Assembly (NCBI GenBank): GCA_965644295.1
Contig: CBFFRP010000335.1
Span: 124,001 to 188,000, forward strand
DNA from: Paraphysomonas bandaiensis
Lineage: Eukaryota > Protista > Chrysophyceae
Direction: 5' to 3'
Length of the DNA stretch: 64,000 nucleotides
The position numbers were made by a program, and so were the translations under genes. Shown here in pieces: positions 1-61,258 of this stretch; position 1 is the first letter of the stretch; every line of letters begins with the position of its first letter. The notes under the pieces were generated by a model. The model saw only the letters and a program-made list of their open reading frames with translations, was not told the origin of the DNA and made no database searches.

Positions 1-3000
1 TCCCACGAAACTAATTCAGCGTCCGGATCGTGAGCGCCAGTTGTGCGGAATATGTACTCGCCGTCTGCCATGCAAGACTTACATGCGGTAGTGTGGTCAC
101 CCCCTTCATAAAACTCGCTACAATAAGGTTTACCGTATGCAAACAGTACAGATTTGTTTTCAGCATCAGTGATGTACCATCCCGTCCGAAGGAATTCGGA
201 TGAGGTCACATTCAGGCTGCTATCTGCTGAGTCGCCTAGAGAAGTGTTACCAGAGTTGGTAAAATCCATGAAAAACTCATCGGCATAAATATGGGTGTCC
301 ACATTAAAAGAAAAGCAGGTACTACCGCAATTTTCTGGATATATCCACAGATTTTTCCACGAATCGATGGTATAGGACTGACTAATGTAGTCAAAGTTGA
401 ACACCACATGCGTGCCATAACCACCATAGTATTTATTTCTCCATACACCGTTTTCAACAATTTGAACAGTCCAGTGAACCTCCCAAAACAACGCAGGATG
501 GGACACCACACCATCATCCAGCTCAAAATAATACGACTGGTCATAAGGTACATTTAGGGGAACGAGCATCCCCCCACGAATGGATTCATTAAATTTCAAG
601 CCAGTCTTAATCAGATTCGATTGATACACTTGTGCTGAGGGCTGAATAGAATCAGCAGATGTAGTATGTTGGTGTTGATTGGCTGACAACTTAGTGCTAG
701 AACTGGGACCATTTCGCATTGTAGCATAGTATGTGAAGTTAATACTGTGAGGCCACCCGTCACCAAACTGATCATAGAGAGTAATATACAACCCAGTCGG
801 CTTAGACACAGCGGGAGGATACTCCAATATGTCATGCAATATAAAGGGAGGAAAAGGTGTGGGTACAAATGATGGAGCATAACTCGGTATAGGCGTTGGA
901 CCCACTGATGGCCTACAAGAAGGCGCAGCGCTGGGGGTCTCAGAAGGTTCAAATGACGGTAAAAGTGTAGGGGATGCGGAGAGGGAGTCCGAACAGACTT
1001 GATCCACACCGCCCTGCGCTCCTGGAGTACACTTGCCATCTACAATAGTAAACCGAAGCTGAAACTGCGACGTACCGGAAATTCCACAGAACTCCCACAA
1101 CTCCCAATCACTATCACTATCACAAGCACCGGTTGTTTTATACAAATATTCACCATCAGGAAGGCAGCATGAGCATCGACTTTCATTTCCCTCGGCATTA
1201 CATGATGGTGAGCCGTATGCAGTTATCGTAGATGTCTCATTCGCATCTACAATATACCAACCAAGAGTCATGTACTCGCCAGTAGAAATATTTGGTCCAT
1301 AGCCATATGTAATAGGAGTAGACGAATGTAGTACATTACCCCAAAACACATCCAATGAATTATCACCCGTAGTCAAACAATCATGACATACAGATGGATA
1401 CTTCCATACATTTTGAGAGTTCAACAAACTATATGACCCATCCATACGATTAAATGCAAATGTCAAGGTAGTGTTATACCCTCCATAATACTTCTCCTTC
1501 CAAACACCACCCTCTACAATCTGAACTGTCCAGTGTATCTCCCAATAGTACTCGGGAACGATAGATTTCCCATCACTGTCTGTGGAAAATAAGTTGAAAT
1601 GGTACAGTTGATCAACATTTAAATCAGATGGCGGTAAACATCCTGACAGCTTCGGACATTGACAATTCAAGGAATTGGAAACTATATTAGACTCATCATC
1701 ACGAACTTGGGCCCAATAATAGAGTTTAGTTTCATTTCCCCAGCCATCACCAAACTGGTCAAAAGCACTGATATAGAGACAGGTTTCATTATACGCACCA
1801 TCGGAATCAGAACAGTCACTGCATTCAAGAACATTAACCAATGAAAGAGTGCCCAGAATAGTAGGGTTGGACGAAGGAATTGCAGAGGGGATCCACGAAG
1901 GAGATCCACTCGGTAGGCTTGACGGAATAGATGTGGGTTCACCTGAAGGCTCTCCAGTAGGCAAACTACTGGGGACAGATGATGGCTCACCAGTAGGATC
2001 ACCACTAGGTAATGAAGTCGGTACATTGCTTGGTACTGAACTTGGCTGCCCTGTTGGTTCACCACTCGGTAGGCTTGACGGAATAGATGTGGGTTCAAAA
2101 GTTGGTATAGACGTTGGACCCACTGATGGCCTACAAGAAGGCGCAGCGCTGGGGGTCTCAGAAGGTTCAAATGACGGTAAAAGTGTAGGGGATGCGGAGA
2201 GGGAGTCCGAACAGACTTGATCCACACCGCCCTGCGCTCCTGGAGTACACTTGCCATCTACAATAGTAAACCGAAGTTGAAACTGCGACGTACCGGAAAT
2301 TCCACAGAACTCCCACAACTCCCAATCACTATCACTATCACAAGCACCGGTTGTTTTATACAAATATTCACCATCAGGAAGGCAGCATGAGCATCGACTT
2401 TCATTTCCCTCGGCATTACATGATGGTGAGCCGTATGCAGTTATCGTAGATGTCTCATTCGCATCTACAATATACCAACCAAGAGTCATGTACTCGCCAG
2501 TAGAAATATTTGGTCCATAGCCATATGTAATAGGAGTAGACGAATGTAGTACATTACCCCAAAACACATCCAATGAATTATCACCCGTAGTCAAACAATC
2601 ATGACATACAGATGGATACTTCCATACATTTTGAGAGTTCAACAAACTATATGACCCATCCATACGATTAAATGCAAATGTCAAGGTAGTGTTATACCCT
2701 CCATAATACTTCTCCTTCCAAACACCACCCTCTACAATCTGAACTGTCCAGTGTATCTCCCAATAGTACTCGGGAACGATAGATTTCCCATCACTGTCTG
2801 TGGAAAATAAGTTGAAATGGTACAGTTGATCAACATTTAAATCAGATGGCGGTAAACATCCTGACAGCTTCGGACATTGACAATTCAAGGAATTGGAAAC
2901 TATATTAGACTCATCATCACGAACTTGGGCCCAATAATAGAGTTTAGTTTCATTTCCCCAGCCATCACCAAACTGGTCAAAAGCACTGATATAGAGACAG

Positions 3001-6000
3001 GTTTCATTATACGCACCATCGGAATCAGAACAGTCACTGCATTCAAGAACATTAACCAATGAAAGAGTGCCCAGAATAGTAGGGTTGGACGAAGGAATTG
3101 CAGAGGGGATCCACGAAGGAGATCCACTCGGTAGGCTTGACGGAATAGATGTGGGTTCACCTGAAGGCTCTCCAGTAGGCAAACTACTGGGGACAGATGA
3201 TGGCTCACCAGTAGGATCACCACTAGGTAATGAAGTCGGTACATTGCTTGGTACTGAACTTGGCTGCCCTGTTGGTTCACCACTCGGTAGGCTTGACGGA
3301 ATAGATGTGGGTTCAATAGTTGGTATAGACGTTGGACCTACTGATGGCCTACAAGAAGGCGCAGCGCTGGGGGTCTCAGAAGGTTCAAATGACGGTAAAA
3401 GTGTAGGGGATGCGGAGAGGGAGTCCGAACAGACTTGATCCACACCGCCCTGCGCTCCTGGAGTACACTTGCCATCTACAATAGTAAACCGAAGCTGAAA
3501 CTGCGACGTACCGGAAATTCCACAGAACTCCCACAACTCCCAATCACTATCACTATCACAAGCACCGGTTGTTTTATACAAATATTCACCATCAGGAAGG
3601 CAGCATGAGCATCGACTTTCATTTCCCTCGGCATTACATGATGGTGAGCCGTATGCAGTTATCGTAGATGTCTCATTCGCATCTACAATATACCAACCAA
3701 GAGTCATGTACTCGCCAGTAGAAATATTTGGTCCATAGCCATATGTAATAGGAGTAGACGAATGTAGTACATTACCCCAAAACATATCCAATGAATTATC
3801 ACCCGTAGTCAAACAATCATGACATACAGATGGATACTTCCATACATTTTGAGAGTTCAACAAACTATATGACCCATCCATACGATTAAATGCAAATGTC
3901 AAGGTAGTGTTATACCCTCCATAATACTTCTCCTTCCAAACACCACCCTCTACAATCTGAACTGTCCAGTGTATCTCCCAATAGTACTCGGGAACGATAG
4001 ATTTCCCATCACTGTCTGTGGAAAATAAGTTGAAATGGTACAGTTGATCAACATTTAAATCAGATGGCGGTAAACATCCTGACAGCTTCGGACATTGACA
4101 ATTCAAGGAATTGGAAACTATATTAGACTCATCATCACGAACTTGGGCCCAATAATAGAGTTTAGTTTCATTTCCCCAGCCATCACCAAACTGGTCAAAA
4201 GCACTGATATAGAGACAGGTTTCATTATACGCACCATCGGAATCAGAACAGTCACTGCACTCAAGAACATTAACCAATGAAAGAGTGCCCAGAATAGTAG
4301 GGTTGGACGAAGGAATTGCAGAGGGGATCCACGAAGGAGATCCACTCGGTAGGCTTGACGGAATAGATGTGGGTTCACCTGAAGGCTCTCCAGTAGGCAA
4401 ACTACTGGGGACAGATGATGGCTCACCAGTAGGATCACCACTAGGTAATGAAGTCGGTACATTGCTTGGTACTGAACTTGGCTGCCCTGTTGGTTCACCA
4501 CTCGGTAGGCTTGACGGAATAGATGTGGGTTCACCTGAAGGCTCTCCAGTAGGCAAACTACTGGGGACAGATGATGGCTCACCAGTAGGATCACCACTAG
4601 GTAATGAAGTCGGTACATTGCTTGGTACTGAACTTGGCTGCCCTGTTGGTTCACCACTCGGTAGGCTTGACGGAATAGATGTGGGTTCACCTGAAGGCTC
4701 TCCAGTAGGCAAACTACTGGGGACAGATGATGGCTCACCAGTAGGATCACCACTAGGTAATGAAGTCGGTACATTGCTTGGTACTGAACTTGGCTGCCCT
4801 GTTGGTTCACCACTCGGTAGGCTTGACGGAATAGATGTGGGTTCACCTGAAGGCTCTCCAGTAGGCAAACTACTGGGGACAGATGATGGCTCACCAGTAG
4901 GATCACCACTAGGTAATGAAGTCGGTACATTGCTTGGTACTGAACTTGGCTGCCCTGTTGGTTCACCACTCGGTAGGCTTGACGGAATAGATGTGGGTTC
5001 ACCTGAAGGCTCTCCAGTAGGCAAACTACTGGGGACAGATGATGGCTCACCAGTAGGATCACCACTAGGTAATGAAGTCGGTACATTGCTTGGTACTGAA
5101 CTTGGCTGCCCTGTTGGTTCACCACTCGGTAGGCTTGACGGAATAGATGTGGGTTCACCTGAAGGCTCTCCAGTAGGCAAACTACTGGGGACAGATGATG
5201 GCTCACCAGTAGGATCACCACTAGGTAATGAAGTCGGTACATTGCTTGGTACTGAACTTGGCTGCCCTGTTGGTTCACCACTCGGTAGGCTTGACGGAAT
5301 AGATGTGGGTTCACCTGAAGGCTCTCCAGTAGGCAAACTACTGGGGACAGATGATGGCTCACCAGTAGGATCACCACTAGGTAATGAAGTCGGTACATTG
5401 CTTGGTACTGAACTTGGCTGCCCTGTTGGTTCACCACTCGGTAGGCTTGACGGAATAGATGTGGGTTCACCTGAAGGCTCTCCAGTAGGCAAACTACTGG
5501 GGACAGATGATGGCTCACCAGTAGGATCACCACTAGGTAATGAAGTCGGTACATTGCTTGGTACTGAACTTGGCTGCCCTGTTGGTTCACCACTCGGTAG
5601 GCTTGACGGAATAGATGTGGGTTCACCTGAAGGCTCTCCAGTAGGCAAACTACTGGGGACAGATGATGGCTCACCAGTAGGATCACCACTAGGTAATGAA
5701 GTCGGTACATTGCTTGGTACTGAACTTGGCTGCCCTGTTGGTTCACCACTCGGTAGGCTTGACGGAATAGATGTGGGTTCACCTGAAGGCTCTCCAGTAG
5801 GCAAACTACTGGGGACAGATGATGGCTCACCAGTAGGATCACCACTAGGTAATGAAGTCGGTACATTGCTTGGTACTGAACTTGGCTGCCCTGTTGGTTC
5901 ACCACTCGGTAGGCTTGACGGAATAGATGTGGGTTCACCTGAAGGCTCTCCAGTAGGCAAACTACTGGGGACAGATGATGGCTCACCAGTAGGATCACCA

Positions 6001-9000
6001 CTAGGTAATGAAGTCGGTACATTGCTTGGTACTGAACTTGGCTGCCCTGTCGGTTCACCACTCGGTAGGCTTGACGGAATAGATGTGGGTTCACCTGAAG
6101 GCTCTCCAGTAGGCAAACTACTGGGGACAGATGATGGCTCACCAGTAGGATCACCACTAGGTAATGAAGTCGGTACATTGCTTGGTACTGAACTTGGCTG
6201 CCCTGTTGGTTCACCACTCGGTAGGCTTGACGGAATAGATGTGGGTTCACCTGAAGGCTCTCCAGTAGGCAAACTACTGGGGACAGATGATGGCTCACCA
6301 GTAGGATCACCACTAGGTAATGAAGTCGGTACATTGCTTGGTACTGAACTTGGCTGCCCTGTTGGTTCACCACTCGGTAGGCTTGACGGAATAGATGTGG
6401 GTTCACCTGAAGGCTCTCCAGTAGGCAAACTACTGGGGACAGATGATGGCTCACCAGTAGGATCACCACTAGGTAATGAAGTCGGTACATTGCTTGGTAC
6501 TGAACTTGGCTGCCCTGTTGGTTCACCACTCGGTAGGCTTGACGGAATAGATGTGGGTTCACCTGAAGGCTCTCCAGTAGGCAAACTACTGGGGACAGAT
6601 GATGGCTCACCAGTAGGATCACCACTAGGTAATGAAGTCGGTACATTGCTTGGTACTGAACTTGGCTGCCCTGTTGGTTCACCACTCGGTAGGCTTGACG
6701 GAATAGATGTGGGTTCACCTGAAGGCTCTCCAGTAGGCAAACTACTGGGGACAGATGATGGCTCACCAGTAGGATCACCACTAGGTAATGAAGTCGGTAC
6801 ATTGCTTGGTACTGAACTTGGCTGCCCTGTTGGTTCACCACTCGGTAGGCTTGACGGAATAGATGTGGGTTCACCTGAAGGCTCTCCAGTAGGCAAACTA
6901 CTGGGGACAGATGATGGCTCACCAGTAGGATCACCACTAGGTAATGAAGTCGGTACATTGCTTGGTACTGAACTTGGCTGCCCTGTCGGTTCACCACTCG
7001 GTAGGCTTGACGGAATAGATGTGGGTTCACCTGAAGGCTCTCCAGTAGGCAAACTACTGGGGACAGATGATGGCTCACCAGTAGGATCACCACTAGGTAA
7101 TGAAGTCGGTACATTGCTTGGTACTGAACTTGGCTGCCCTGTCGGTTCACCACTCGGTAGGCTTGACGGAATAGATGTGGGTTCACCTGAAGGCTCTCCA
7201 GTAGGCAAACTACTGGGGACAGATGATGGCTCACCAGTAGGATCACCACTAGGTAATGAAGTCGGTACATTGCTTGGTACTGAACTTGGCTGCCCTGTTG
7301 GTTCACCACTCGGTAGGCTTGACGGAATAGATGTGGGTTCACCTGAAGGCTCTCCAGTAGGCAAACTACTGGGGACAGATGATGGCTCACCAGTAGGATC
7401 ACCACTAGGTAATGAAGTCGGTACATTGCTTGGTACTGAACTTGGCTGCCCTGTCGGTTCACCACTCGGTAGGCTTGACGGAATAGATGTGGGTTCACCT
7501 GAAGGCTCTCCAGTAGGCAAACTACTGGGGACAGATGATGGCTCACCAGTAGGATCACCACTAGGTAATGAAGTCGGTACATTGCTTGGTACTGAACTTG
7601 GCTGCCCTGTCGGTTCACCACTCGGTAGGCTTGACGGAATAGATGTGGGTTCACCTGAAGGCTCTCCAGTAGGCAAACTACTGGGGACAGATGATGGCTC
7701 ACCAGTAGGATCACCACTAGGTAATGAAGTCGGTACATTGCTTGGTACTGAACTTGGCTGCCCTGTTGGTTCACCACTCGGTAGGCTTGACGGAATAGAT
7801 GTGGGTTCACCTGAAGGCTCTCCAGTAGGCAAACTACTGGGGACAGATGATGGCTCACCAGTAGGATCACCACTAGGTAATGAAGTCGGTACATTGCTTG
7901 GTACTGAACTTGGCTGCCCTGTTGGTTCACCACTCGGTAGGCTTGACGGAATAGATGTGGGTTCACCTGAAGGCTCTCCAGTAGGCAAACTACTGGGGAC
8001 AGATGATGGCTCACCAGTAGGATCACCACTAGGTAATGAAGTCGGTACATTGCTTGGTACTGAACTTGGCTGCCCTGTTGGTTCACCACTCGGTAGGCTT
8101 GACGGAATAGATGTGGGTTCACCTGAAGGCTCTCCAGTAGGATGATTGGTTGGAAGCAATGATGGAACCGACGATGGTACACCGGTAGGATTAGAACTCA
8201 ATGTGTCACTACACACGCCAGTAACATCACCATAAGCGCCAGGGTGACATACACCATCAGTTATCACAAATGTCAACTCATTCTGACCTGTACCAGACAC
8301 ACCACAGAATTCCCACTCAAACCTTGAGCTTCTATCATCACAAGCCCCAGTGGATCTAAAGATATAGCTACCATCACCCAAACAAGCCAAACAATCAACC
8401 TCACTACCATTAGGGTATAACATATTATCGCAGAATACTGTCTCGTGCGCGTACAATAATTCTTTGTTTATATCAGTCACATACCATGAACTTGTGTACA
8501 ACTGCGTTGACGTACTACCGTGAGTTGACATGCTACCATCCCCTTTATAGGAAACAGACTCCAAATAATCTTGATACTTCACTGGCCACTTCAGGGAGCT
8601 ATTGCATGTAGTGCACAGTCTAGAGGGCATCCGCAAGTTATCAGATAAAACAAAATCATATGACTCATCAGCACGATTGTACTCAAATACCATACTTGTG
8701 TTATAACCTCCGTAATACTTCTCCTTTCGAGTGCCATTTTCTATAATCTGAACAGTCCAATGCATCTCCCAAACATACTCGGGTACAGTTTCATTCATAC
8801 TTGCCAGGGTAAAAAAGTAAAGCTGATCGATATTCAATTCCGAAGGATACACACAACCCGACATCTGAGAACAACTACAATCCAGAGAATTACGAATTAT
8901 GTTCGAGTCATCATCACGTATCTGAACCCAATAGTAGAAATCTACTGCATCAGACCAACCATCACCAAATTGATCCAATAATGTCACATACAAACATGTA

Positions 9001-15000: not shown

Positions 15001-18000
15001 TCACCCAAACAAGCCAAACAATCAACCTCACTGCCATTACTATGTAACACATCTGATTCATCACAAAATGGCTGCTCATGCAAATATATAACAGTTTTAA
15101 ACAGGTCGGTTATATACCACGATATACCATTGAAACCTTCAGGACCACCAGAATAACCGTACGTATGATATATACCATTCCCATTTCCATAGTGCAGTAC
15201 TTCTGCAGCATATTGGTCAAAGGACACCGACATATTCCAAAAATAAGAACAATCTTTACAAACACCAGGAACAGACCATAAATTTTCCGACATAACCAAA
15301 TCATATGACTCATCAGCACGATTGTACTCAAATACCATACTTGTGTTATAACCTCCGTAATACTTCTCCTTTCGCGTGCCATTTTCAATCACTTGGATTG
15401 TCCAGTGCATCTCCCAAGGATATTCAGCCACGACACTCACGCTTCCATTGGCATCAATACCAAGTAAAGTGAAATAATACAACTGATCGATATTCAATTC
15501 CGAAGGATACACACAACCCGACATCTGAGAACAACTACAATCCAGAGAATTACGAATTATGTTCGAGTCATCATCGTGTATCTGAACCCAATAGTAGAAA
15601 TCTACTGCATCGGACCAACCATCACCAAATTGATCCAATAATGTCACATACAAACATGTATCATTGCTACCAATATTAACTGTATCGCAGTCAGATATAC
15701 ACTCCAACTCATTGTTCAATACAACTGTGCCCAAAGTGGTAGGAGCGGTGATATAAAACAGTGATGGAAGAGATGTGGGTGATGAAGAGGGGCATTTAGA
15801 GGGCACAGATGTTGGTAAATATGATGGCTGTCCCGATGGAACACCAGAAGGTGAATTAGACGGTTCAGCTGTTGGACTTGACGATGGGTCCCCAGTAGGA
15901 TCACCACTAGGTAATGAAGTCGGTACATTGCTTGGTACTGAACTTGGCTGCCCTGTTGGTTCACCACTCGGTAGGCTTGACGGAATAGATGTGGGTTCAC
16001 CTGAAGGCTCTCCAGTAGGCAAACTACTGGGGACAGATGATGGCTCACCAGTAGGATCACCACTAGGTAATGAAGTCGGTACATTGCTTGGTACTGAACT
16101 TGGCTGCCCTGTTGGTTCACCACTCGGTAGGCTTGACGGAATAGATGTGGGTTCACCTGAAGGCTCTCCAGTAGGATGATTGGTTGGAAGCAATGATGGA
16201 ACCGACGATGGTACACCGGTAGGATTAGAACTCAATGTGTCACTACACACACCAGTAACATCACCATAAGCGCCAGGGTGACATACACCATCAGTTATCA
16301 CAAATGTCAACTCATTCTGACCTGTACCAGACACACCACAGAATTCCCACTCAAACCTTGAGCTTCTATCATCACAAGCCCCAGTGGATCTAAAGATATA
16401 GCTACCATCACCCAAACAAGCCAAACAATCAACCTCACTACCATTAGGGTATAACATATTATCGCAGAATACTGTCTCGTGCGCGTACAATAATTCTTTG
16501 TTTATATCAGTCACATACCATGAACTTGTGTACAACTGCGTTGACGTACTACCGTGAGTTGACATGCTACCATCCCCTTTATAGGAAACAGACTCCACAT
16601 AATCTTGATACTTCACTGGCCACTTCAGGGAGCTATTGCATGTAGTGCACAGTCTAGAGGGCATCCGCAAGTTATCAGATAAAACAAAATCATATGACTC
16701 ATCAGCACGATTGTACTCAAATACCATACTTGTGTTATATCCTCCGTAATACTTCTCCTTTCGCGTGCCATTTTCTATAATCTGAACAGTCCAATGCATC
16801 TCCCAAACATACTCCGGAACAGTTTCATTCATACTTGCCAGGGTAAAATAGTAAAGCTGATCGATATTCAATTCCGAAGGATACACACAACCCGACATCT
16901 GAGAACAACTACAATCCAGAGAATTACGAATTATGTTCGATTCATCATCGCGTATCTGAACCCAATAGTAGAAATCTACTGCATCAGACCAACCATCACC
17001 AAATTGATCCAATAATGTCACAAACAAACAGGTTACGGCTTTGTGTTCATCAGGAATACTGCAGTTTGAAGCACATTCAAGGGTATTATTTAGAGTTATA
17101 GTTGACAATGCAGTCGGCATAATAGATGGTGAAGTGGAAGGAAACGCCGTCGGAAACTTACTAGGAACCAATGATGGTACAGAACTCGGAGTGCTAGTGG
17201 GTGCTGTGGACGGCAACGTGGATGGAGAGTTAGAAGGTTTCATGGATGGCCTTCCGGAGGGTCGCATTGACGGCAATGCAGATGGACCACTAGTCGGTTC
17301 AACTGAAGGATTTACAGACGGAAGAGCCGATGGATTAGAACTTGGTATAGCAGATGGGAGTACAGACGGGCAAGTAGAGGGACACGAAGAAGGAGTAACA
17401 GAAGGCCGACTCGAAGGTAACACAGACGGAGAGTGCGTAGGCATACCAGAAGGGTTGTCAGTTGGTTCGTGTGTAGGCTTTTCCGTAGGCAGCTGTGAGG
17501 GATTATGAGAAGGTGATGCACTGGGTGTGTATGTTGGTCCTCCACTGGGGTCCCCCGATGGACAGCACGTCGGCATTAAAGATGGATTGCTAGTAGGGCC
17601 CCTCGATGGACAGCACGAGGGGATACTAGATGGATCGCTGGTAGGTTTCTCAGTTGGTATACAACTTGGCTTAAACGTAGGGATGCTGGAAGGGATACAA
17701 GAAGGTTGAAGTGTAGGTTCGCCAGATGGACCTTGTGTCGGGTATCCACTAGGTTGCACAGTGGGAAATGATGAAGGGCATTGACTAGGAGACGAAGTAG
17801 GGTCCACACTAGGGATAAATGTTGGCCACCAGGAAGGATAATTTGAAGGCATGCCTGATGGTATTCCAGTCGGTACAAAAGTTGGAAGATATGTGGGCAC
17901 TCTCGACGGTTTTGCAGAGGGAAGTGCTGAAGGAGAAGAGGTGGGAAGTACGGTTGGTATACTCGTTGGCTCATCAGAAGGTAAAAACGTGGGTTGCTCA

Positions 18001-21000
18001 GACGGAACAAGGGTAGGGTAAACAGAAGGAAACAATGTTGGAGATCCACTGGGAAGTTCCGTTGGGTTTCCAGTTGGTAAGCCACTTGGACATGTTGACG
18101 GATGCTTAGAAGGTAAGCTCGAAGGAAATGTAGAAGGTGAAAAGGATGGTACTGCACTAGGAACACAGGAAGGAATAGATGATGGGGATTCAGACGGCAA
18201 AACACTGGGATGAAACGTTGGCAAAGATGATGGAGACACACTAGGAAAAACACTAGGTATACGACTAGGACATCCACTTGGACAAAACGTAGGCTCACCG
18301 GTTGGAAGCAATGATGGAACCGACGATGGTACACTGGTAGGATTAGAACTCAATGTGTCACTACACACGCCAGTAACATCACCATAAGCGCCAGGGTGAC
18401 ATACACCATCAGTTATCACAAATGACAACTCATTCTGACCGGTACCAGACACACCACAGAATTCCCACTCAAACCTTGAACTTCTATCATCACAAGCCCC
18501 AGTGGATCTAAAGATATAGCTACCATCACCCAAACAAGCCAAACAATCAACCTCACTGCCATTACTATGTAACACATCTGATTCATCACAAAATGGCTGC
18601 TCATGCAAATATATAACAGTTTTAAACAGGTCGGTTATATACCACGATATACCATTGAAACCTTCAGGACCACCAGAATAACCGTACGTATGATATATAC
18701 CATTCCCATTTCCATAGTGCAGTACTTCTGCAGCATATTGGTCAAAGGACACCGACATATTCCAAAAATAAGAACAATCTTTACAAACACCAGGAACAGA
18801 CCATAAATTTTCCGACATAACCAAATCATATGACTCATCAGCACGATTGTACTCAAATACCATACTTGTGTTATAACCTCCGTAATACTTCTCCTTTCGC
18901 GTGCCATTTTCTATAATCTGAACAGTCCAATGCATCTCCCAAACATACTCCGGAACAGTTTCATTCATACTTGCCAGGGTAAAATAGTAAAGCTGATCGA
19001 TATTCAATTCCGAAGGATACACACAACCCGACATCTGAGAACAACTACAATCCAGAGAATTACGAATTATGTTCGAGTCATCATCGCGTATCTGAACCCA
19101 ATAGTAGAAATCTACTGCATCAGACCAACCATCACCAAATTGATCCAATAATGTCACATACAAACATGTATCATTGCTACCAATATTAACTGTATCGCAG
19201 TCAGATATACATTCTAACTCATTGTTCAATACAACTGTGCCCAAAGTCGTAGGGGCGGATGATGGTTGTCCGGATGGAAGAGATGTGGGTGATGAAGAGG
19301 GGCATTCAGAGGGCACAGATGTTGGTAAATATGATGGCTGTCCTGATGGACTCAATGATGGTCGATTCGTAGGGGTACAGGATGGTATTACAGAAGGATA
19401 TCCGCTTGGTACATGTGAAGGAATTCCACTTGGAGATCCACTTGGACAAAACGTAGGCTCACCGGTTGGAAGCAATGATGGAACCGACGATGGTACACTG
19501 GTAGGATTAGAACTCAATGTGTCACTACACACGCCAGTAACATCACCATAAGCGCCAGGGTGACATACACCATCAGTTATCACAAATGACAACTCATTCT
19601 GACCGGTACCAGACACACCACAGAATTCCCACTCAAACCTTGAACTTCTATCATCACAAGCCCCAGTGGATCTAAAGATATAGCTACCATCACCCAAACA
19701 AGCCAAACAATCAACCTCACTGCCATTACTATGTAACACATCTGATTCATCACAAAATGGCTGCTCATGCAAATATATAACAGTTTTAAACAGGTCGGTT
19801 ATATACCACGATATACCATTGAAACCTTCAGGACCACCAGAATAACCGTACGTATGATATATACCATTCCCATTTCCATAGTGCAGTACTTCTGCAGCAT
19901 ATTGGTCAAAGGACACCGACATATTCCAAAAATAAGAACAATCTTTACAAACACCAGGAACAGACCATAAATTTTCCGACATAACCAAATCATATGACTC
20001 ATCAGCACGATTGTACTCAAATACCATACTTGTGTTATATCCTCCGTAATACTTCTCCTTTCGCGTGCCATTTTCTATAATCTGAACAGTCCAATGCATC
20101 TCCCAAACATACTCCGGAACAGTTTCATTCATACTTGCCAGGGTAAAATAGTAAAGCTGATCGATATTCAATTCCGAAGGATACACACAACCCGACATCT
20201 GAGAACAACTACAATCCAGAGAATTACGAATTATGTTCGAGTCATCATCGCGTATCTGAACCCAATAGTAGAAATCTACTGCATCAGACCAACCATCACC
20301 AAATTGATCCAATAATGTCACATACAAACATGTATCATTGCTACCAATATTAACTGTATCGCAGTCAGATATACATTCTAACTCATTGTTCAATACAACT
20401 GTGCCCAAAGTCGTAGGGGCGGATGATGGTTGTCCGGATGGAAGAGATGTGGGTGATGAAGAGGGGCATTCAGAGGGCACAGATGTTGGTAAATATGATG
20501 GCTGTCCTGATGGACTCAATGATGGTCGATTCGTAGGGGTACAGGATGGTATTACAGAAGGATATCCGCTTGGTACATGTGAAGGAATTCCACTTGGAGA
20601 TCCACTAGGACAAAACGTAGGCTCACCGGTTGGAAGCAATGATGGAACCGACGATGGTACACTGGTAGGATTAGAACTCAATGTGTCACTACACACGCCA
20701 GTAACATCACCATAAGCGCCAGGGTGACATACACCATCAGTTATCACAAATGACAACTCATTCTGACCGGTACCAGACACACCACAGAATTCCCACTCAA
20801 ACCTTGAACTTCTATCATCACAAGCCCCAGTGGATCTAAAGATATAGCTACCATCACCCAAACAAGCCAAACAATCAACCTCACTGCCATTACTATGTAA
20901 CACATCTGATTCATCACAAAATGGCTGCTCATGCAAATATATAACAGTTTTAAACAGGTCGGTTATATACCACGATATACCATTGAAACCTTCAGGACCA

Positions 21001-21986
21001 CCAGAATAACCGTACGTATGATATATACCATTCCCATTTCCATAGTGCAGTACTTCTGCAGCATATTGGTCAAAGGACACCGACATATTCCAAAAATAAG
21101 AACAATCTTTACAAACACCAGGAACAGACCATAAATTTTCCGACATAACCAAATCATATGACTCATCAGCACGATTGTACTCAAATACCATACTTGTGTT
21201 ATAACCTCCGTAATACTTCTCCTTTCGAGTGCCATTTTCTATAATCTGAACAGTCCAATGCATCTCCCAAACATACTCCGGAACAGTTTCATTCATACTT
21301 GCCAGGGTAAAATAGTAAAGCTGATCGATATTCAATTCCGAATGATACACACAACCCGACATCTGAGAACAACTACAATCCAGAGAATTACGAATTATGT
21401 TCGAGTCATCATCGCGTATCTGAACCCAATAGTAGAAATCTACTGCATCAGACCAACCATCACCAAATTGATCCAATAATGTCACATACAAACATGTATC
21501 ATTGCTACCAATATTAACTGTATCGCAGTCAGATATACATTCTAACTCATTGTTCAATACAACTGTGCCCAAAGTCGTAGGGGCGGATGATGGTTGTCCG
21601 GATGGAAGAGATGTGGGTGATGAAGAGGGGCATTCAGAGGGCACAGATGTTGGTAAATATGATGGCTGTCCCGATGGAACACCAGAAGGTGAATTAGACG
21701 GTTGTGATGAAGGAGTATATGAGGGTATGCCTGAAGGATATCCACATGGTACATGTGAAGGAGTTCTACTTGGAGACGTGAGTTCACCCGTTGTAAAGTG
21801 AGACGGTGTGATTCTCTCTGATTCATTTTCAGAGTATCTTTCTGCCGTGTTTCCAACCCTTCCCTTCGACGACAACAAAGCATGTTTATGATTGTCATTT
21901 AGCTCTGATGACTGCACATAGTTGTGATATAATATTCCAGTTGGAATCAAAATAATGAATAATAACACACACTTCCACTGTACCAT
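1..21986 (-). CDS. Giant (>7,300 aa, runs off the window) intron-less secreted/surface protein: signal peptide, >=15 Cys-rich DQFGDGW-motif domains and Pro/Ser/Thr mucin-like stalks
   Basis: Manual translation from ATG 21986 gives MVQWKCVLLFIILIPTGILYHNYVQS..., then PSxx repeats, then ELECISDCDTVNIGSNDTCLYVTLLDQFGDGWSDAVDFYYWVQIRDDDSNI...WEMHWTVQ...EKYYGGYNT...CLACLGDGSYIFRSTGACDD...WEFCG. The same frame at positions 3-90 reads ACKSCMADGEYIFRTTGAHDPDAELVSW. The ORF track lists no minus-strand ORF in this frame across 1-22 kb, as expected if there is no stop. All repeat periods (156, 1164, 1191, 1218 bp) are multiples of 3. Confidence 0.92.
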   Translation of the reverse strand, partial: MVQWKCVLLFIILIPTGILYHNYVQSSELNDNHKHALLSSKGRVGNTAERYSENESERITPSHFTTGELTSPSRTPSHVPCGYPSGIPSYTPSSQPSNSPSGVPSGQPSYLPTSVPSECPSSSPTSLPSGQPSSAPTTLGTVVLNNELECISDCDTVNIGSNDTCLYVTLLDQFGDGWSDAVDFYYWVQIRDDDSNIIRNSLDCSCSQMSGCVYHSELNIDQLYYFTLASMNETVPEYVWEMHWTVQIIENGTRKEKYYGGYNTSMVFEYNRADESYDLVMSENLWSVPGVCKDCSYFWNMSVSFDQYAAEVLHYGNGNGIYHTYGYSGGPEGFNGISWYITDLFKTVIYLHEQPFCDESDVLHSNGSEVDCLACLGDGSYIFRSTGACDDRSSRFEWEFCGVSGTGQNELSFVITDGVCHPGAYGDVTGVCSDTLSSNPTSVPSSVPSLLPTGEPTFCPSGSPSGIPSHVPSGYPSVIPSCTPTNRPSLSPSGQPSYLPTSVPSECPSSSPTSLPSGQPSSAPTTLGTVVLNNELECISDCDTVNIGSNDTCLYVTLLDQFGDGWSDAVDFYYWVQIRDDDSNIIRNSLDCSCSQMSGCVYPSELNIDQLYYFTLASMNETVPEYVWEMHWTVQIIENGTRKEKYYGGYNTSMVFEYNRADESYDLVMSENLWSVPGVCKDCSYFWNMSVSFDQYAAEVLHYGNGNGIYHTYGYSGGPEGFNGISWYITDLFKTVIYLHEQPFCDESDVLHSNGSEVDCLACLGDGSYIFRSTGACDDRSSRFEWEFCGVSGTGQNELSFVITDGVCHPGAYGDVTGVCSDTLSSNPTSVPSSVPSLLPTGEPTFCPSGSPSGIPSHVPSGYPSVIPSCTPTNRPSLSPSGQPSYLPTSVPSECPSSSPTSLPSGQPSSAPTTLGTVVLNNELECISDCDTVNIGSNDTCLYVTLLDQFGDGWSDAVDFYYWVQIRDDDSNIIRNSLDCSCSQMSGCVYPSELNIDQLYYFTLASMNETVPEYVWEMHWTVQIIENGTRKEKYYGGYNTSMVFEYNRADESYDLVMSENLWSVPGVCKDCSYFWNMSVSFDQYAAEVLHYGNGNGIYHTYGYSGGPEGFNGISWYITDLFKTVIYLHEQPFCDESDVLHSNGSEVDCLACLGDGSYIFRSTGACDDRSSRFEWEFCGVSGTGQNELSFVITDGVCHPGAYGDVTGVCSDTLSSNPTSVPSSVPSLLPTGEPTFCPSGCPSRIPSVFPSVSPSSLPTFHPSVLPSESPSSIPSCVPSAVPSFSPSTFPSSLPSKHPSTCPSGLPTGNPTELPSGSPTLFPSVYPTLVPSEQPTFLPSDEPTSIPTVLPTSSPSALPSAKPSRVPTYLPTFVPTGIPSGMPSNYPSWWPTFIPSVDPTSSPSQCPSSFPTVQPSGYPTQGPSGEPTLQPSCIPSSIPTFKPSCIPTEKPTSDPSSIPSCCPSRGPTSNPSLMPTCCPSGDPSGGPTYTPSASPSHNPSQLPTEKPTHEPTDNPSGMPTHSPSVLPSSRPSVTPSSCPSTCPSVLPSAIPSSNPSALPSVNPSVEPTSGPSALPSMRPSGRPSMKPSNSPSTLPSTAPTSTPSSVPSLVPSKFPTAFPSTSPSIMPTALSTITLNNTLECASNCSIPDEHKAVTCLFVTLLDQFGDGWSDAVDFYYWVQIRDDESNIIRNSLDCSCSQMSGCVYPSELNIDQLYYFTLASMNETVPEYVWEMHWTVQIIENGTRKEKYYGGYNTSMVFEYNRADESYDFVLSDNLRMPSRLCTTCNSSLKWPVKYQDYVESVSYKGDGSMSTHGSTSTQLYTSSWYVTDINKELLYAHETVFCDNMLYPNGSEVDCLACLGDGSYIFRSTGACDDRSSRFEWEFCGVSGTGQNELTFVITDGVCHPGAYGDVTGVCSDTLSSNPTGVPSSVPSLLPTNHPTGEPSGEPTSIPSSLPSGEPTGQPSSVPSNVPTSLPSGDPTGEPSSVPSSLPTGEPSGEPTSIPSSLPSGEPTGQPSSVPSNVPTSLPSGDPTGDPSSSPTAEPSNSPSGVPSGQPSYLPTSVPSKCPSSSPTSLPSLFYITAPTTLGTVVLNNELECISDCDTVNIGSNDTCLYVTLLDQFGDGWSDAVDFYYWVQIHDDDSNIIRNSLDCSCSQMSGCVYPSELNIDQLYYFTLLGIDANGSVSVVAEYPWEMHWTIQVIENGTRKEKYYGGYNTSMVFEYNRADESYDLVMSENLWSVPGVCKDCSYFWNMSVSFDQYAAEVLHYGNGNGIYHTYGYSGGPEGFNGISWYITDLFKTVIYLHEQPFCDESDVLHSNGSEVDCLACLGDGSYIFRSTGACDDRSSRFEWEFCGVSGTGQNELSFVITDGVCHPGAYGDVTGVCSDTLSSNPTSVPSSVPSLLPTGEPTFCPSGSPSGIPSHVPSGYPSGIPSYTPSSQPSNSPSGVPSGQPSYLPTSVPSECPSSSPTSLPSGQPSSAPTTLGTVVLNNELECISDCDTVNIGSNDTCLYVTLLDQFGDGWSDAVDFYYWVQIRDDDSNIIRNSLDCSCSQMSGCVYPSELNIDQLYYFTLLGIDANGSVSVVAEYPWEMHWTIQVIENGTRKEKYYGGYNTSMVFEYNRADESYDLVMSENLWSVPGVCKDCSYFWNMSVSFDQYAAEVLHYGNGNGIYHTYGYSGGPEGFNGISWYITDLFKTVIYLHEQPFCDESDVLHSNGSEVDCLACLGDGSYIFRSTGACDDRSSRFEWEFCGVSGTGQNELSFVITDGVCHPGAYGDVTGVCSDTLSSNPTSVPSSVPSLLPTGEPTFCPSGSPSGIPSHVPSGYPSGIPSYTPSSQPSNSPSGVPSGQPSYLPTSVPSECPSSSPTSLPSGQPSSAPTTLGTVVLNNELECISDCDTVNIGSNDTCLYVTLLDQFGDGWSDAVDFYYWVQIRDDDSNIIRNSLDCSCSQMSGCVYPSELNIDQLYYFTLLGIDANGSVSVVAEYPWEMHWTIQVIENGTRKEKYYGGYNTSMVFEYNRADESYDLVMSENLWSVPGVCKDCSYFWNMSVSFDQYAAEVLHYGNGNGIYHTYGYSGGPEGFNGISWYITDLFKTVIYLHEQPFCDESDVLHSNGSEVDCLACLGDGSYIFRSTGACDDRSSRFEWEFCGVSGTGQNELSFVITDGVCHPGAYGDVTGVCSDTLSSNPTSVPSSVPSLLPTGEPTFCPSGSPSGIPSHVPSGYPSGIPSYTPSSQPSNSPSGVPSGQPSYLPTSVPSECPSSSPTSLPSGQPSSAPTTLGTVVLNNELECISDCDTVNIGSNDTCLYVTLLDQFGDGWSDAVDFYYWVQIRDDDSNIIRNSLDCSCSQMSGCVYPSELNIDQLYYFTLLGIDANGSVSVVAEYPWEMHWTIQVIENGTRKEKYYGGYNTSMVFEYNRADESYDLVMSENLWSVPGVCKDCSYFWNMSVSFDQYAAEVLHYGNGNGIYHTYGYSGGPEGFNGISWYITDLFKTVIYLHEQPFCDESDVLHSNGSEVDCLACLGDGSYIFRSTGACDDRSSRFEWEFCGVSGTGQNELSFVITDGVCHPGAYGDVTGVCSDTLSSNPTGVPSSVPSLLPTGEPTFCPSGSPSGIPSHVPSGYPTVLGSVVLDDVLDCASNISLYTSYENSTCLLLSVMDQFGDGWSNETQFHYWVQIRDDDSNIVSNTLDCSCLLMSGCLYPSDLNIDQLYHFTLVASNFYDELVVPDHFWEMQWTVELVVNGTRTEKYYGGFNTSMVFLYDRTMESYDLIWSQNLWSYHDDCSGVSSLSESFPNNTLGEFTNLVNESDGYWNIALSVFDQADPTVLYLYSHSWCTTNISSILSDLDGLADGFYTLRTAGAFDANSESVTWDFCGVIGTSQFEFQFSVLNGMCYPGAYGNVDQICNGNISPAPTIIPSGQPSAHPSNCPSSTPTAIPTMLPSGSPSWQPSSFPSSTPTSIPSALPTAVPTALGTVVLNNELECSGADISSIYVTTNDTCLYVTLLDQFGDGWSDAVDFYYWVQIRDDDSNIIRNSLDCSCSQMSGCVYPSELNIDQLYYFTLASMNETVPEYVWEMHWTVQIIENGTRKEKYYGGYNTSIAFQYSGQDRSFDMVWSENTYATPMPCEYCVNLITSLESFLAIPLNEDGIRCTPQWYIANATTTEIHAYGIISSMGISDCVYGNLLDGIYTLRITHTTTSLQKQEWEFCGVSGTGQNELTFVITDGVCHPGAYGDVTGVCSDTLSSNPTSVPSSVPSLLPTGKPTSIPSGEPTWLPTTSPSYLPTSVPSECPSSSPTSLPSGQPSSAPTTLGTVVLNNELECISDCDTVNIGSNDTCLYVTLLDQFGDGWSDAVDFYYWVQIRDDDSNIIRNSLDCSCSQMSGCVYPSELNIDQLYFFTLASMNETVPEYVWEMHWTVQIIENGTRKEKYYGGYNTSMVFEYNRADESYDFVLSDNLRMPSRLCTTCNSSLKWPVKYQDYLESVSYKGDGSMSTHGSTSTQLYTSSWYVTDINKELLYAHETVFCDNMLYPNGSEVDCLACLGDGSYIFRSTGACDDRSSRFEWEFCGVSGTGQNELTFVITDGVCHPGAYGDVTGVCSDTLSSNPTGVPSSVPSLLPTNHPTGEPSGEPTSIPSSLPSGEPTGQPSSVPSNVPTSLPSGDPTGEPSSVPSSLPTGEPSGEPTSIPSSLPSGEPTGQPSSVPSNVPTSLPSGDPTGEPSSVPSSLPTGEPSGEPTSIPSSLPSGEPTGQPSSVPSNVPTSLPSGDPTGEPSSVPSSLPTGEPSGEPTSIPSSLPSGEPTGQPSSVPSNVPTSLPSGDPTGEPSSVPSSLPTGEPSGEPTSIPSSLPSGEPTGQPSSVPSNVPTSLPSGDPTGEPSSVPSSLPTGEPSGEPTSIPSSLPSGEPTGQPSSVPSNVPTSLPSGDPTGEPSSVPSSLPTGEPSGEPTSIPSSLPSGEPTGQPSSVPSNVPTSLPSGDPTGEPSSVPSSLPTGEPSGEPTSIPSSLPSGEPTGQPSSVPSNVPTSLPSGDPTGEPSSVPSSLPTGEPSGEPTSIPSSLPSGEPTGQPSSVPSNVPTSLPSGDPTGEPSSVPSSLPTGEPSGEPTSIPSSLPSGEPTGQPSSVPSNVPTSLPSGDPTGEPSSVPSSLPTGEPSGEPTSIPSSLPSGEPTGQPSSVPSNVPTSLPSGDPTGEPSSVPSSLPTGEPSGEPTSIPSSLPSGEPTGQPSSVPSNVPTSLPSGDPTGEPSSVPSSLPTGEPSGEPTSIPSSLPSGEPTGQPSSVPSNVPTSLPSGDPTGEPSSVPSSLPTGEPSGEPTSIPSSLPSGEPTGQPSSVPSNVPTSLPSGDPTGEPSSVPSSLPTGEPSGEPTSIPSSLPSGEPTGQPSSVPSNVPTSLPSGDPTGEPSSVPSSLPTGEPSGEPTSIPSSLPSGEPTGQPSSVPSNVPTSLPSGDPTGEPSSVPSSLPTGEPSGEPTSIPSSLPSGEPTGQPSSVPSNVPTSLPSGDPTGEPSSVPSSLPTGEPSGEPTSIPSSLPSGEPTGQPSSVPSNVPTSLPSGDPTGEPSSVPSSLPTGEPSGEPTSIPSSLPSGEPTGQPSSVPSNVPTSLPSGDPTGEPSSVPSSLPTGEPSGEPTSIPSSLPSGEPTGQPSSVPSNVPTSLPSGDPTGEPSSVPSSLPTGEPSGEPTSIPSSLPSGEPTGQPSSVPSNVPTSLPSGDPTGEPSSVPSSLPTGEPSGEPTSIPSSLPSGEPTGQPSSVPSNVPTSLPSGDPTGEPSSVPSSLPTGEPSGEPTSIPSSLPSGEPTGQPSSVPSNVPTSLPSGDPTGEPSSVPSSLPTGEPSGEPTSIPSSLPSGEPTGQPSSVPSNVPTSLPSGDPTGEPSSVPSSLPTGEPSGEPTSIPSSLPSGSPSWIPSAIPSSNPTILGTLSLVNVLECSDCSDSDGAYNETCLYISAFDQFGDGWGNETKLYYWAQVRDDESNIVSNSLNCQCPKLSGCLPPSDLNVDQLYHFNLFSTDSDGKSIVPEYYWEIHWTVQIVEGGVWKEKYYGGYNTTLTFAFNRMDGSYSLLNSQNVWKYPSVCHDCLTTGDNSLDMFWGNVLHSSTPITYGYGPNISTGEYMTLGWYIVDANETSTITAYGSPSCNAEGNESRCSCCLPDGEYLYKTTGACDSDSDWELWEFCGISGTSQFQLRFTIVDGKCTPGAQGGVDQVCSDSLSASPTLLPSFEPSETPSAAPSCRPSVGPTSIPTIEPTSIPSSLPSGEPTGQPSSVPSNVPTSLPSGDPTGEPSSVPSSLPTGEPSGEPTSIPSSLPSGSPSWIPSAIPSSNPTILGTLSLVNVLECSDCSDSDGAYNETCLYISAFDQFGDGWGNETKLYYWAQVRDDESNIVSNSLNCQCPKLSGCLPPSDLNVDQLYHFNLFSTDSDGKSIVPEYYWEIHWTVQIVEGGVWKEKYYGGYNTTLTFAFNRMDGSYSLLNSQNVWKYPSVCHDCLTTGDNSLDVFWGNVLHSSTPITYGYGPNISTGEYMTLGWYIVDANETSTITAYGSPSCNAEGNESRCSCCLPDGEYLYKTTGACDSDSDWELWEFCGISGTSQFQLRFTIVDGKCTPGAQGGVDQVCSDSLSASPTLLPSFEPSETPSAAPSCRPSVGPTSIPTFEPTSIPSSLPSGEPTGQPSSVPSNVPTSLPSGDPTGEPSSVPSSLPTGEPSGEPTSIPSSLPSGSPSWIPSAIPSSNPTILGTLSLVNVLECSDCSDSDGAYNETCLYISAFDQFGDGWGNETKLYYWAQVRDDESNIVSNSLNCQCPKLSGCLPPSDLNVDQLYHFNLFSTDSDGKSIVPEYYWEIHWTVQIVEGGVWKEKYYGGYNTTLTFAFNRMDGSYSLLNSQNVWKYPSVCHDCLTTGDNSLDVFWGNVLHSSTPITYGYGPNISTGEYMTLGWYIVDANETSTITAYGSPSCNAEGNESRCSCCLPDGEYLYKTTGACDSDSDWELWEFCGISGTSQFQLRFTIVDGKCTPGAQGGVDQVCSDSLSASPTLLPSFEPSETPSAAPSCRPSVGPTPIPSYAPSFVPTPFPPFILHDILEYPPAVSKPTGLYITLYDQFGDGWPHSINFTYYATMRNGPSSSTKLSANQHQHTTSADSIQPSAQVYQSNLIKTGLKFNESIRGGMLVPLNVPYDQSYYFELDDGVVSHPALFWEVHWTVQIVENGVWRNKYYGGYGTHVVFNFDYISQSYTIDSWKNLWIYPENCGSTCFSFNVDTHIYADEFFMDFTNSGNTSLGDSADSSLNVTSSEFLRTGWYITDAENKSVLFAYGKPYCSEFYEGGDHTTACKSCMADGEYIFRTTGAHDPDAELVSW
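900..4340 (-). repeat. Three near-identical 1218-bp domain+linker units (domain copies 12-14 of the giant protein)
   Basis: Near-identical shadow ORFs at 1659, 2877 and 4095 (period 1218). Confidence 0.92.
4342..8141 (-). repeat. 156-bp coding tandem array, ~24 copies, encoding PTSIPSSLPSGEPTGQPSSVPSNVPTSLPSGDPTGEPSSVPSSLPTGEPSGE (13 P-[ST]-x-x tetrapeptides)
   Basis: Exact 156-bp periodicity. The only variant I noticed is ccctgtT/Cggt (copies near 6051, 6987, 7143, 7455, 7611), which is synonymous (Pro CCA/CCG) in the giant ORF frame. Confidence 0.95.
11130..15740 (-). repeat. Four near-identical 1191-bp domain+linker units (domain copies 5-8)
   Basis: Shadow ORFs repeat at 11505, 12696, 13887 and 15078 (period 1191). 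Confidence 0.92.
18270..21680 (-). repeat. Three near-identical 1164-bp domain+linker units (domain copies 1-3)
   Basis: Shadow ORFs repeat at 19174, 20338 and 21502 (period 1164). Confidence 0.92.
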
Positions 21987-60635: not shown

Positions 60636-60918
60636 GATGACCGAGAGCTACTATGCGACTAGTGACTTAATCGGATGGTTTGGACTTTAATTCTTCAGTC
60701 TCTCGCACCATATACACACACACATCTCACCCGTCCACATACACACTACATACACAGAGAGATGGGCACATACAGGCGTATACATACATATACGTGTACG
60801 GTATGTGGCATGCATCTTCTATCCATCCACTCCCTACAGAATACACTGTACTCTGTCTGTATCCCAGCCATGTATTCTGCTGCAGTACAGTGTATAGAGG
60901 CAGTGCAGGTATACTACG

Positions 60919-61052
60919 ACATACATACATACATACATACATACATACATACATACATACATACATACATACATACATACATACATACATACATACATAC
61001 ATACATACATACATACATACATACATACATACATACATACATACATACATAC
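60919..61052. repeat. (TACA)n microsatellite, ~33 units
   Basis: Seen directly. Confidence 0.97.
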
Positions 61053-61258
61053 TGTGGCATGAAACTCCTAGTTTTAGGGCTTGGGAGTTTCTCTCCTTCT
61101 GGAAACATGGGGTTTCCCTTCAGGATACGGTAGTCGAGTGGCAGTAGTTTCATGCCAGACAATTCATACATGATTCTTATCTACATAATAATCATATATT
61201 CTAGTCCTGCTCTGTTCTTGCTGTTAGCTACGTACTTGTAGGCAGTGGTCTGGGCACA
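61053..61258 (+). mobile_element. 206-bp solo LTR (or duplicated LTR) inside (TACA)n
   Basis: TGTG...CACA termini, ATAC on both sides (possible 4-bp TSD), identical to 61363-61568. Confidence 0.7.

Follow-up and report, generated by a model that had tools for sequence, protein, structure and literature searches.

Mosaic domain copies in a giant tandem-domain gene of Paraphysomonas bandaiensis and their probable origin by partial gene conversion

A 64,000-nucleotide (nt) stretch of Paraphysomonas bandaiensis DNA (contig CBFFRP010000335.1, positions 124,001 to 188,000; hereafter the window) carries on its minus strand an intronless giant gene with fifteen copies (c1 to c15) of a Cys-rich domain of about 300 amino acids (aa). 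Several of these copies are mosaics in which near-identical DNA encloses blocks of old and highly diverged sequence, and the evidence supports recombination or gene conversion as the process that made them. The explanation that we favour as a whole, with a probability of roughly 0.7, is that the old copies of this giant surface-protein gene have been partly overwritten by one spreading unit type (type A) through gene conversion and unequal crossing-over. The array is best read as a case of ongoing homogenisation in which partial conversion has been caught in progress.

Organisation of the giant gene

On the minus strand, 22031 to 3 form one reading frame of 7,343 codons that no stop interrupts. 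The first Met in this frame is encoded at 21986, and a stop lies upstream of it. The motif DQFGDGW occurs 15 times in the frame (at 21473, 20309, 19145, 17009, 15635, 14444, 13253, 12062, 11027, 9986, 8975, 4196, 2978, 1760, and 773). Every occurrence marks one domain copy, which carries WEFCG...C at its end. The copies are separated by linkers rich in Pro, Ser, and Thr (P/S/T) that are 30 to 1,295 aa long. The features of the gene are listed below.

3..21986, minus strand: giant gene, intronless, with its ATG at 21986 and a length of at least 7,328 codons; the left window edge cuts off its C-terminus
21918..21986, minus strand: hydrophobic N-terminus starting MVQWKCVLLFIILIPTGIL, read off the translation by eye
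20661-21572, 19497-20408, and 18333-19244, minus strand: copies c1-c3, repeating every 1164 nt, with centre type A and 0-3 differences per domain
17109..18332, minus strand: unique 408-aa P/S/T linker upstream of c4, without a match of at least 97% elsewhere in the array
16215..17108, minus strand: copy c4, mosaic, with old leader (17023-17105), young N-core, old centre B (16440-16686), and young C-terminus
11235..15734, minus strand: copies c5-c8, repeating every 1191 nt, with centre type A and, in addition, an old patch of 96 nt
14196-14291, minus strand: patch of c6, measured; the patches of c5 (15387-15482), c7 (13005-13100), and c8 (11814-11909) are placed via the 1191-nt period
10257..11126, minus strand: copy c9, an old copy diverged over its full length
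9255..10085, minus strand: copy c10, mosaic, with old leader (10011-10085), young N-core, old centre X (9393-9717), and young C-terminus
8181..9074, minus strand: copy c11, mosaic, with a type-A leader (0 differences to c2) and centre B (8406-8652, 1 difference to c4)
4342..8141, minus strand: 156-bp (52-aa) P/S/T repeat that forms the longest linker, 24.4 copies, 99% identical
3399-4295, 2181-3077, and 963-1859, minus strand: copies c12-c14, period 1218 nt, near-identical to each other and diverged from the rest throughout
3..872, minus strand: copy c15, truncated at the window edge; more divergent than any other copy and with an insert of 28 aa; an orthologous membrane-proximal type

The 156-bp unit is also found after c4 (1.9 copies, 15883-16175), and partial units follow c12 and c13. 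Two open reading frames (ORFs) of about 1,300 aa at 4118-8182 (minus strand) and 4285-8145 (plus strand) were rejected as genes, since the repeat is without stops in several frames.

The visible protein contains 17% Ser and 11% Pro (28% together), 245 Cys residues, and 93 NxS/T sites. Its hydrophobic start is probably a signal peptide or a signal anchor. The P/S/T-rich segment that follows this start and the linkers match the PT repeat (PF04886) in a Pfam scan. The sequence features point most likely to a mucin-like surface protein of type I with heavy glycosylation, from a marine microbial eukaryote. No REJ, lectin, or leucine-rich repeat (LRR) domain was found in the part of the protein that lies within the window.

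Block structure of the domain copies

The sequence-only reading of this DNA had described one framework with six interchangeable cassettes in the segment after GGYNT. Six versions of this segment are indeed present among the 15 copies, both in the translation and in codon-aligned DNA. The segment is SENLWSVPGVCKDC in c1-c3 and c5-c8, SDNLRMPSRLCTTC in c4 and c11, and SENTYATPMPCEYC in c10, and it differs again in c9, in c12-c14, and in c15. The single framework holds for only part of the array. Codon-aligned DNA exhibits a near-identical framework in ten copies only (c1-c8, c10, and c11), and three centres are set into it. The other three versions are not cassettes: c9, c12-c14, and c15 differ from the ten framework copies by 35-50% of their DNA across the entire domain, and the framework is conserved in them as protein motifs only. 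The array consists of three centre, two patch, and three leader types on one ten-copy framework, together with three wholly diverged copy types.

Centre A is present in seven of the ten framework copies. The DNA of c5-c8 is that of c1-c3 apart from the 96-nt patch, which exhibits 48 differences including a 15-nt insertion or deletion (indel); the separate patch swap noticed earlier in these copies is borne out. Of 277 alignment columns, about 150 distinguish centre B (c4 and c11, about 250 nt long) from type A; its flanks have 0-2 differences. The leader of c4 is a type of its own (86 nt, 44 differences). The unique centre between near-identical DNA flanks that had been reported for c10 is likewise confirmed: its N-core has 0 mismatches to c2 and its C-terminal part has 2 differences, and centre X between them (about 325 nt) has 250 differences in 418 alignment columns. 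The DNA identity is 98-100% within c1-c3, within c5-c8, and within c12-c14. The units of c4 and c11 also share a block of 1,154 nt that includes the start of the 156-bp repeat.

The old blocks are placed in a regular manner. Each border falls where one of the sequence stretches that vary least among the old copies ends, and the blocks occupy the stretches that vary most. The leader of c4 adjoins the unique 408-aa linker, and c9, its linker, and the leader of c10 form one old stretch. No block has a close match among the other copies in the window.

Evidence for recombination among the copies

The block borders are abrupt, with 0 mismatches per 30 nt beside 11-20 mismatches per 30 nt, and they are resolved to a few nucleotides. 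The synonymous divergence (dS) is 0-0.06 in the shared parts, and it is saturated in the odd blocks, where the proportion of differing synonymous sites (pS) is 0.6-0.87. The framework of c2 is also saturated at synonymous sites when it is compared with that of c9, c12, and c15, with a non-synonymous divergence (dN) of only 0.16-0.45. Purifying selection alone is therefore insufficient to account for the DNA identity of the ten copies. The framework is under purifying selection yet it is not mutationally cold. The DNA identity of the ten copies means recent common ancestry, and the blocks date from the time of the oldest splits of the array.

The trees of the individual segments disagree, and congruent segment trees were not found. 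The leader of c11 has the sequence of type A, and c4 lies on a long branch in the leader tree. Both copies form a clade with support of 100/100 in the centre tree, distant from A. Copies c5-c8 are separate from the other copies in the patch tree. In the pairwise homoplasy index (PHI) test on the ten copies, no permutation out of 2,000 reached a value as low as the observed one. The pattern of c11 was tested by a direct count, in leader and centre, of the sites that separate c2 from c4. Copy c11 agrees with c2 at 44 of 44 leader sites and with c4 at 133 of 133 centre sites, which excludes chance (Fisher test, p = 1e-42). No difference in GC content at third codon positions that would indicate biased conversion was seen.

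Junctions in independent reads

The Logan contigs of four runs (X1, X8, X9, and X12), which are built from de Bruijn graphs, were aligned to positions 8150-12250. The runs with DNA of the window are of marine origin, among them seawater metagenomes, and are filed under several coded species labels; none of them is recorded as RNA. Centre B is found on a 307-nt contig (8376-8682) in X1 and X8. Centre X is found on contigs of X1 (9363-9738), X8 (9333-9738), and X9 (9423-9738). All four runs have a contig of 156 nt (11784-11939) with the patch of c5-c8. In a de Bruijn graph of 31-mers, a contig extends about 30 nt past the border of a repeat. The contigs with B, X, and the patch include, on either side, about 30 nt of the shared framework, except for the X9 contig, which does so only at the 9717 border. 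These contigs come from separate studies with three coded organism labels and have 0-3 single-nucleotide polymorphisms (SNPs) relative to the window. Since they carry an old block together with its shared flank, the junctions between block and framework exist in the reads and are not assembly chimeras. The junctions are real and alike in different strains; those of B and X recur with 0-2 SNPs in runs of other labels and years.

A single X1 contig of 1192 nt (9981-11172) joins c9, its linker, and the leader of c10. The contig depths in X1 are 36-44 for single-copy sequence, 75 for centre B, 268 for centre A, 124 for the patch, and 336 for the N-core. The copy numbers in the assembly (1, 2, 7, 4, and 10, in this order) are in rough agreement with these depths. 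The depth ratios differ between X1 and X8; X8 may be RNA, and depths are rough. No sign of silent donor cassettes was found in the X1 contig depths, on which this negative is based, the rest of the genome not having been searched.

Contigs with at least 90% identity over centre B were not found in X9 and X12, and X12 likewise has no contig over centre X and most of c9; a gap in such contigs proves nothing. The composition of the array may differ between the coded organisms. The window and X8 differ at 7 synonymous and 4 non-synonymous sites over 8150-11200. Both differences within centre X (9622 and 9628) are non-synonymous, a number too small to interpret.

Taken together, the mosaics are supported as products of recombination or gene conversion, as had been proposed, because the borders are sharp, dS contrasts between blocks and shared parts, the segment trees are incongruent, the PHI test is significant, and the junctions are present in independent reads.

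The domain family

The domain that runs from DQFGDGW to WEFCG has no Pfam match in five protein pieces of the window and in 58 family members (0/58), in which only the PT repeat was matched. The best Pfam match, DUF7743, was rejected as it lies below the gathering threshold (E = 0.035, 14 bits against a cut-off of 27). The word search identified 25 relatives of the domain, and the profile search identified 580 representative proteins that carry it at E <= 0.001. A further word search yielded mainly matches to the PT linkers. Many of the profile matches cover only positions ~10-165 or only ~194-301, often repeatedly in one protein, which argues that the domain unit consists of two separate evolutionary modules.

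The AlphaFold models reached a predicted local distance difference test (pLDDT) score of 79, and of 87 with a deeper alignment. Two beta-sandwiches are predicted at residues ~25-147 and ~200-290. The variable centre, when it is mapped on the predicted structure, corresponds to the stretch of lower confidence between them. In c1 residue numbers, centre B spans 141-229 and centre X spans 123-258; both straddle the predicted junction of the two modules, and their borders are not shared.

The Foldseek search of two models against the PDB gave no match at E <= 0.001. The shape search of the ESM Atlas gave TM-scores of at most 0.32, and its feature search gave scores of at most 0.84 with unnamed clusters only. 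The wide comparison with VIA-align returned only generic beta-sandwiches (Z <= 5.8). The SpyCatcher-like matches (Z 4.8-4.9) are in the background range of the tool. TerD, a calcium-binding beta-sandwich, matches the N-terminal sub-domain with Z 5.6-5.8, a root-mean-square deviation of 3.5-3.6 A over 114-116 residues, and 8-10% identity, values that are within the range of common arrangements for the tool. Nothing relevant to the domain motif was found in the literature.

The relatives pair the domain with REJ, C-type lectin, LRR, or FG-GAP domains, and these partners suggest an adhesive or recognition role for the giant protein. Three relatives (P0036, P0050, and P0051) are 2.7-3.1 thousand aa long, with one domain near the N-terminus and a REJ domain about 1,000 aa beyond it. 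They look like protist receptors of the PKD1/REJ type with the domain as the outermost module. The relative P0026 has four domains; the last belongs to the c15 type, and a Ser-rich stretch, a transmembrane (TM) helix, and a short tail come after it. Copy c15 clusters with this last domain and with P0032 (support of 93-97 in the Shimodaira-Hasegawa-like approximate likelihood ratio test). The c15 type is orthologous across species, so the membrane-proximal type predates the split of these organisms and the copies are old.

The metagenomic contig L001 carries at least 11 domain copies with about 42% protein identity to the copies in the window, and it has sharp mosaics of its own. The first ~200 nt of one of its copies are old and the centre is homogenised, and two other copies exhibit a 30-nt patch. 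The part that is spared differs from that in the window, so mosaicism appears to be recurrent and the centre is not always spared. The frame of L001 over 10001-22061 shifts near 12009-12058 and 15278-15373; frameshift errors or introns are possible in this 7x contig. The gene called there at 6,241 aa extends past this region.

Neighbouring genes in the window

The neighbours of the giant gene are ordinary eukaryotic ones (GH5 cellulase-like, cyclin, methyltransferase, M28 peptidase, GNAT, and Rsm22). The best matches of the methyltransferase are at 66%. The GH5 cellulase-like pieces are listed below.

27253-27756, minus strand: GH5 cellulase-like piece
28556-29005, plus strand: GH5 cellulase-like piece
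29109-30563, plus strand: GH5 cellulase-like piece

The plus-strand GH5 piece continues, apparently over an intron, into a PT-rich stalk and a TM helix. The linker of this stalk is of the same style as the linkers of the giant gene. A microsatellite of the (TACA)n type is present at ~60900-61100, with translations of the form HTYIHTYI....

Discussion

The favoured explanation begins with a set of old and diverged domain copies. The survivors of this old array would be c9, c12, c15, and the forerunners of c4 and c10. The unit of type A would then have spread recently by two routes. Unequal crossing-over would have doubled whole units, which would account for c1-c3, c5-c8, c12-c14, and the pair of c4 and c11. 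Conversion tracts of about 300 nt would have overwritten parts of the neighbouring old copies. Conversion requires homology, and from what is established about recombination, homology-dependent tracts would be unable to run through heterology. The tracts would thus begin and end in the regions of conserved motifs and would not cross the most diverged stretches, namely the leader, the loop patch, and the centre. The outcome would be a near-identical framework that encloses old blocks, and the putative cassettes would be unconverted remnants. We infer the direction of change (overwriting, with no import) and the heterology limit on the tracts. A programmed system of cassette shuffling is not needed, and no new mechanism that generates diversity is indicated at present.

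The sequence-only reading had gone further and proposed a system of interchangeable cassettes that builds a repertoire, as in antigenic variation. Such a system is not supported. The borders differ between copies, and the old blocks are contiguous with unique old linkers, which fits overwritten old copies and not inserted cassettes. All copies are in one ORF, no donors are apparent from the depths, the same junctions of B and X are stable across the runs, and the L001 array spares an N-terminus.

Selection could nevertheless act on an array of this kind. Conversion would homogenise the scaffold, and diversifying or balancing selection would keep and sometimes exchange the centres, which would provide several binding specificities (for prey, host, mate, or substrate). 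The centre evolves fastest at the protein level (dN 0.7-1.1 against 0.16-0.5 in the framework) and is the indel-rich part across the domain family. The centre is also the part spared in two independent mosaics (B and X), a unit copied to a second site took the B block along (c4 and c11), the relatives are located in receptor-like proteins, and the two SNPs between strains in centre X are both non-synonymous (n = 2). However, the borders of B and X are not shared, and each block straddles the junction of the two sub-domains and is no single loop module. The L001 array has a homogenised centre and a spared N-terminus, the same mosaics recur in different strains, seven of the ten framework copies have the same centre A, and the binding of ligands by the centre types is purely hypothetical. 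We consider this explanation unlikely. The more specific proposal that selection retains the old centres (A, B, X, c9, c12-c14, and c15) as distinct ligand-binding surfaces of one multi-specific array seems to us a rather slim possibility. A third explanation is an originally homogeneous array of type A into which ectopic conversion later introduced the B, X, patch, and leader blocks, with diverged paralogous genes at other sites in the genome as donors. The domain family does have many paralogue-like relatives in metagenomes. However, the X1 depths fit two B copies and one X copy, exactly those of the giant gene, and leave no room for extra donors. The odd leaders of c4 and c10 run on into unique old linkers, that of c10 also into the old copy c9, and the blocks lack a close counterpart among the copies in the window. 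The continuity with unique old sequence, the depths, and the position of the borders at the edges of conserved stretches, which fits homology-dependent conversion, all favour the overwriting of old copies, and import is very unlikely in our view. The mosaics could finally be chimeras of mis-joined near-identical repeats, as units of 1.2 kb at 98-100% identity and 3.8 kb of 156-bp repeat are hard to assemble. The 22-kb frame is intact, however, and the depths roughly match the assembled copy numbers. The B and X centres with about 30 nt of flank on both sides (one border in X9) are present in contigs of separate studies, which refutes chimeras at the level of the junctions. An assembly artefact is extremely improbable.

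Several points weigh against the overwriting of old copies by type A. The direction of change is inferred, and donors could have been lost after an import. The mosaics B and X arose independently and spare roughly the same region, and selection for a variable centre gives the same pattern. Contig depth is a rough guide to copy number, and the tool itself warns against such use. X1 may be the sample behind the assembly, and the order and number of the copies rest on that assembly.

Comparison with known systems

The bacterial Periscope Proteins (SasG, Rib, and SHIRT arrays) are tandem arrays in which high DNA identity is proposed to permit recombination within the gene, together with the gain or loss of repeats and variation in length (PMC8201768). 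Both the Periscope Proteins and the giant gene exhibit tandem folded domains of very high DNA identity, as seen in c1-c3, c5-c8, c12-c14, and the 24 copies of the 156-bp repeat. Unlike the Periscope Proteins, the giant gene is eukaryotic, encodes more than 7,300 aa, has mucin-like linkers between its domains, and retains old diverged copies together with partly converted mosaics. The Periscope Proteins are the nearest described protein class.

The mosaics can also be compared with those of interlocus or interparalogue gene conversion in the concerted evolution of duplicated genes (for example PMC2720389). Homogeneous stretches beside old divergence and incongruent segments are common to both. 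In the giant gene, however, the donor and the acceptor are domains of one ORF, with tracts of about 300 nt in a unit of 900 nt. Mechanistically, the array is a case of ordinary concerted evolution among tandem units.

Borrelia vlsE, Neisseria pilE/pilS, and the mosaic variant surface glycoproteins (VSGs) of trypanosomes combine silent donor cassettes with a single expression site, and switching occurs within clonal lineages. The giant gene resembles these systems in that segmental conversion sets divergent segments in a conserved surface-protein frame. It differs from them in that all of its copies are in one ORF, no extra donors are indicated by the contig depths, and the same mosaics are found across strains. 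The giant protein can also be compared with the mucin-like PT-repeat stalks and the REJ/PKD1-like receptors of protists. Its linkers match the PT repeat, and relatives have one domain copy before REJ. The visible giant protein is nevertheless without REJ, lectin, and LRR, and its domain is without a Pfam model.

Conclusions

The giant gene provides a clean and well-bounded example of partial conversion in one eukaryotic gene, in which young and old sequence adjoin within one domain. It is a natural case for the study of heterology limits on conversion tracts and of the evolution of giant repetitive protist surface proteins. The domain belongs to an unannotated extracellular family of about 580 representative proteins, without a Pfam match or a clear relative of solved structure, and it deserves a name and could be given a family model. 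If the centres were kept by selection, the giant protein would be a multi-specific recognition array on one polypeptide, built from an undescribed domain family.

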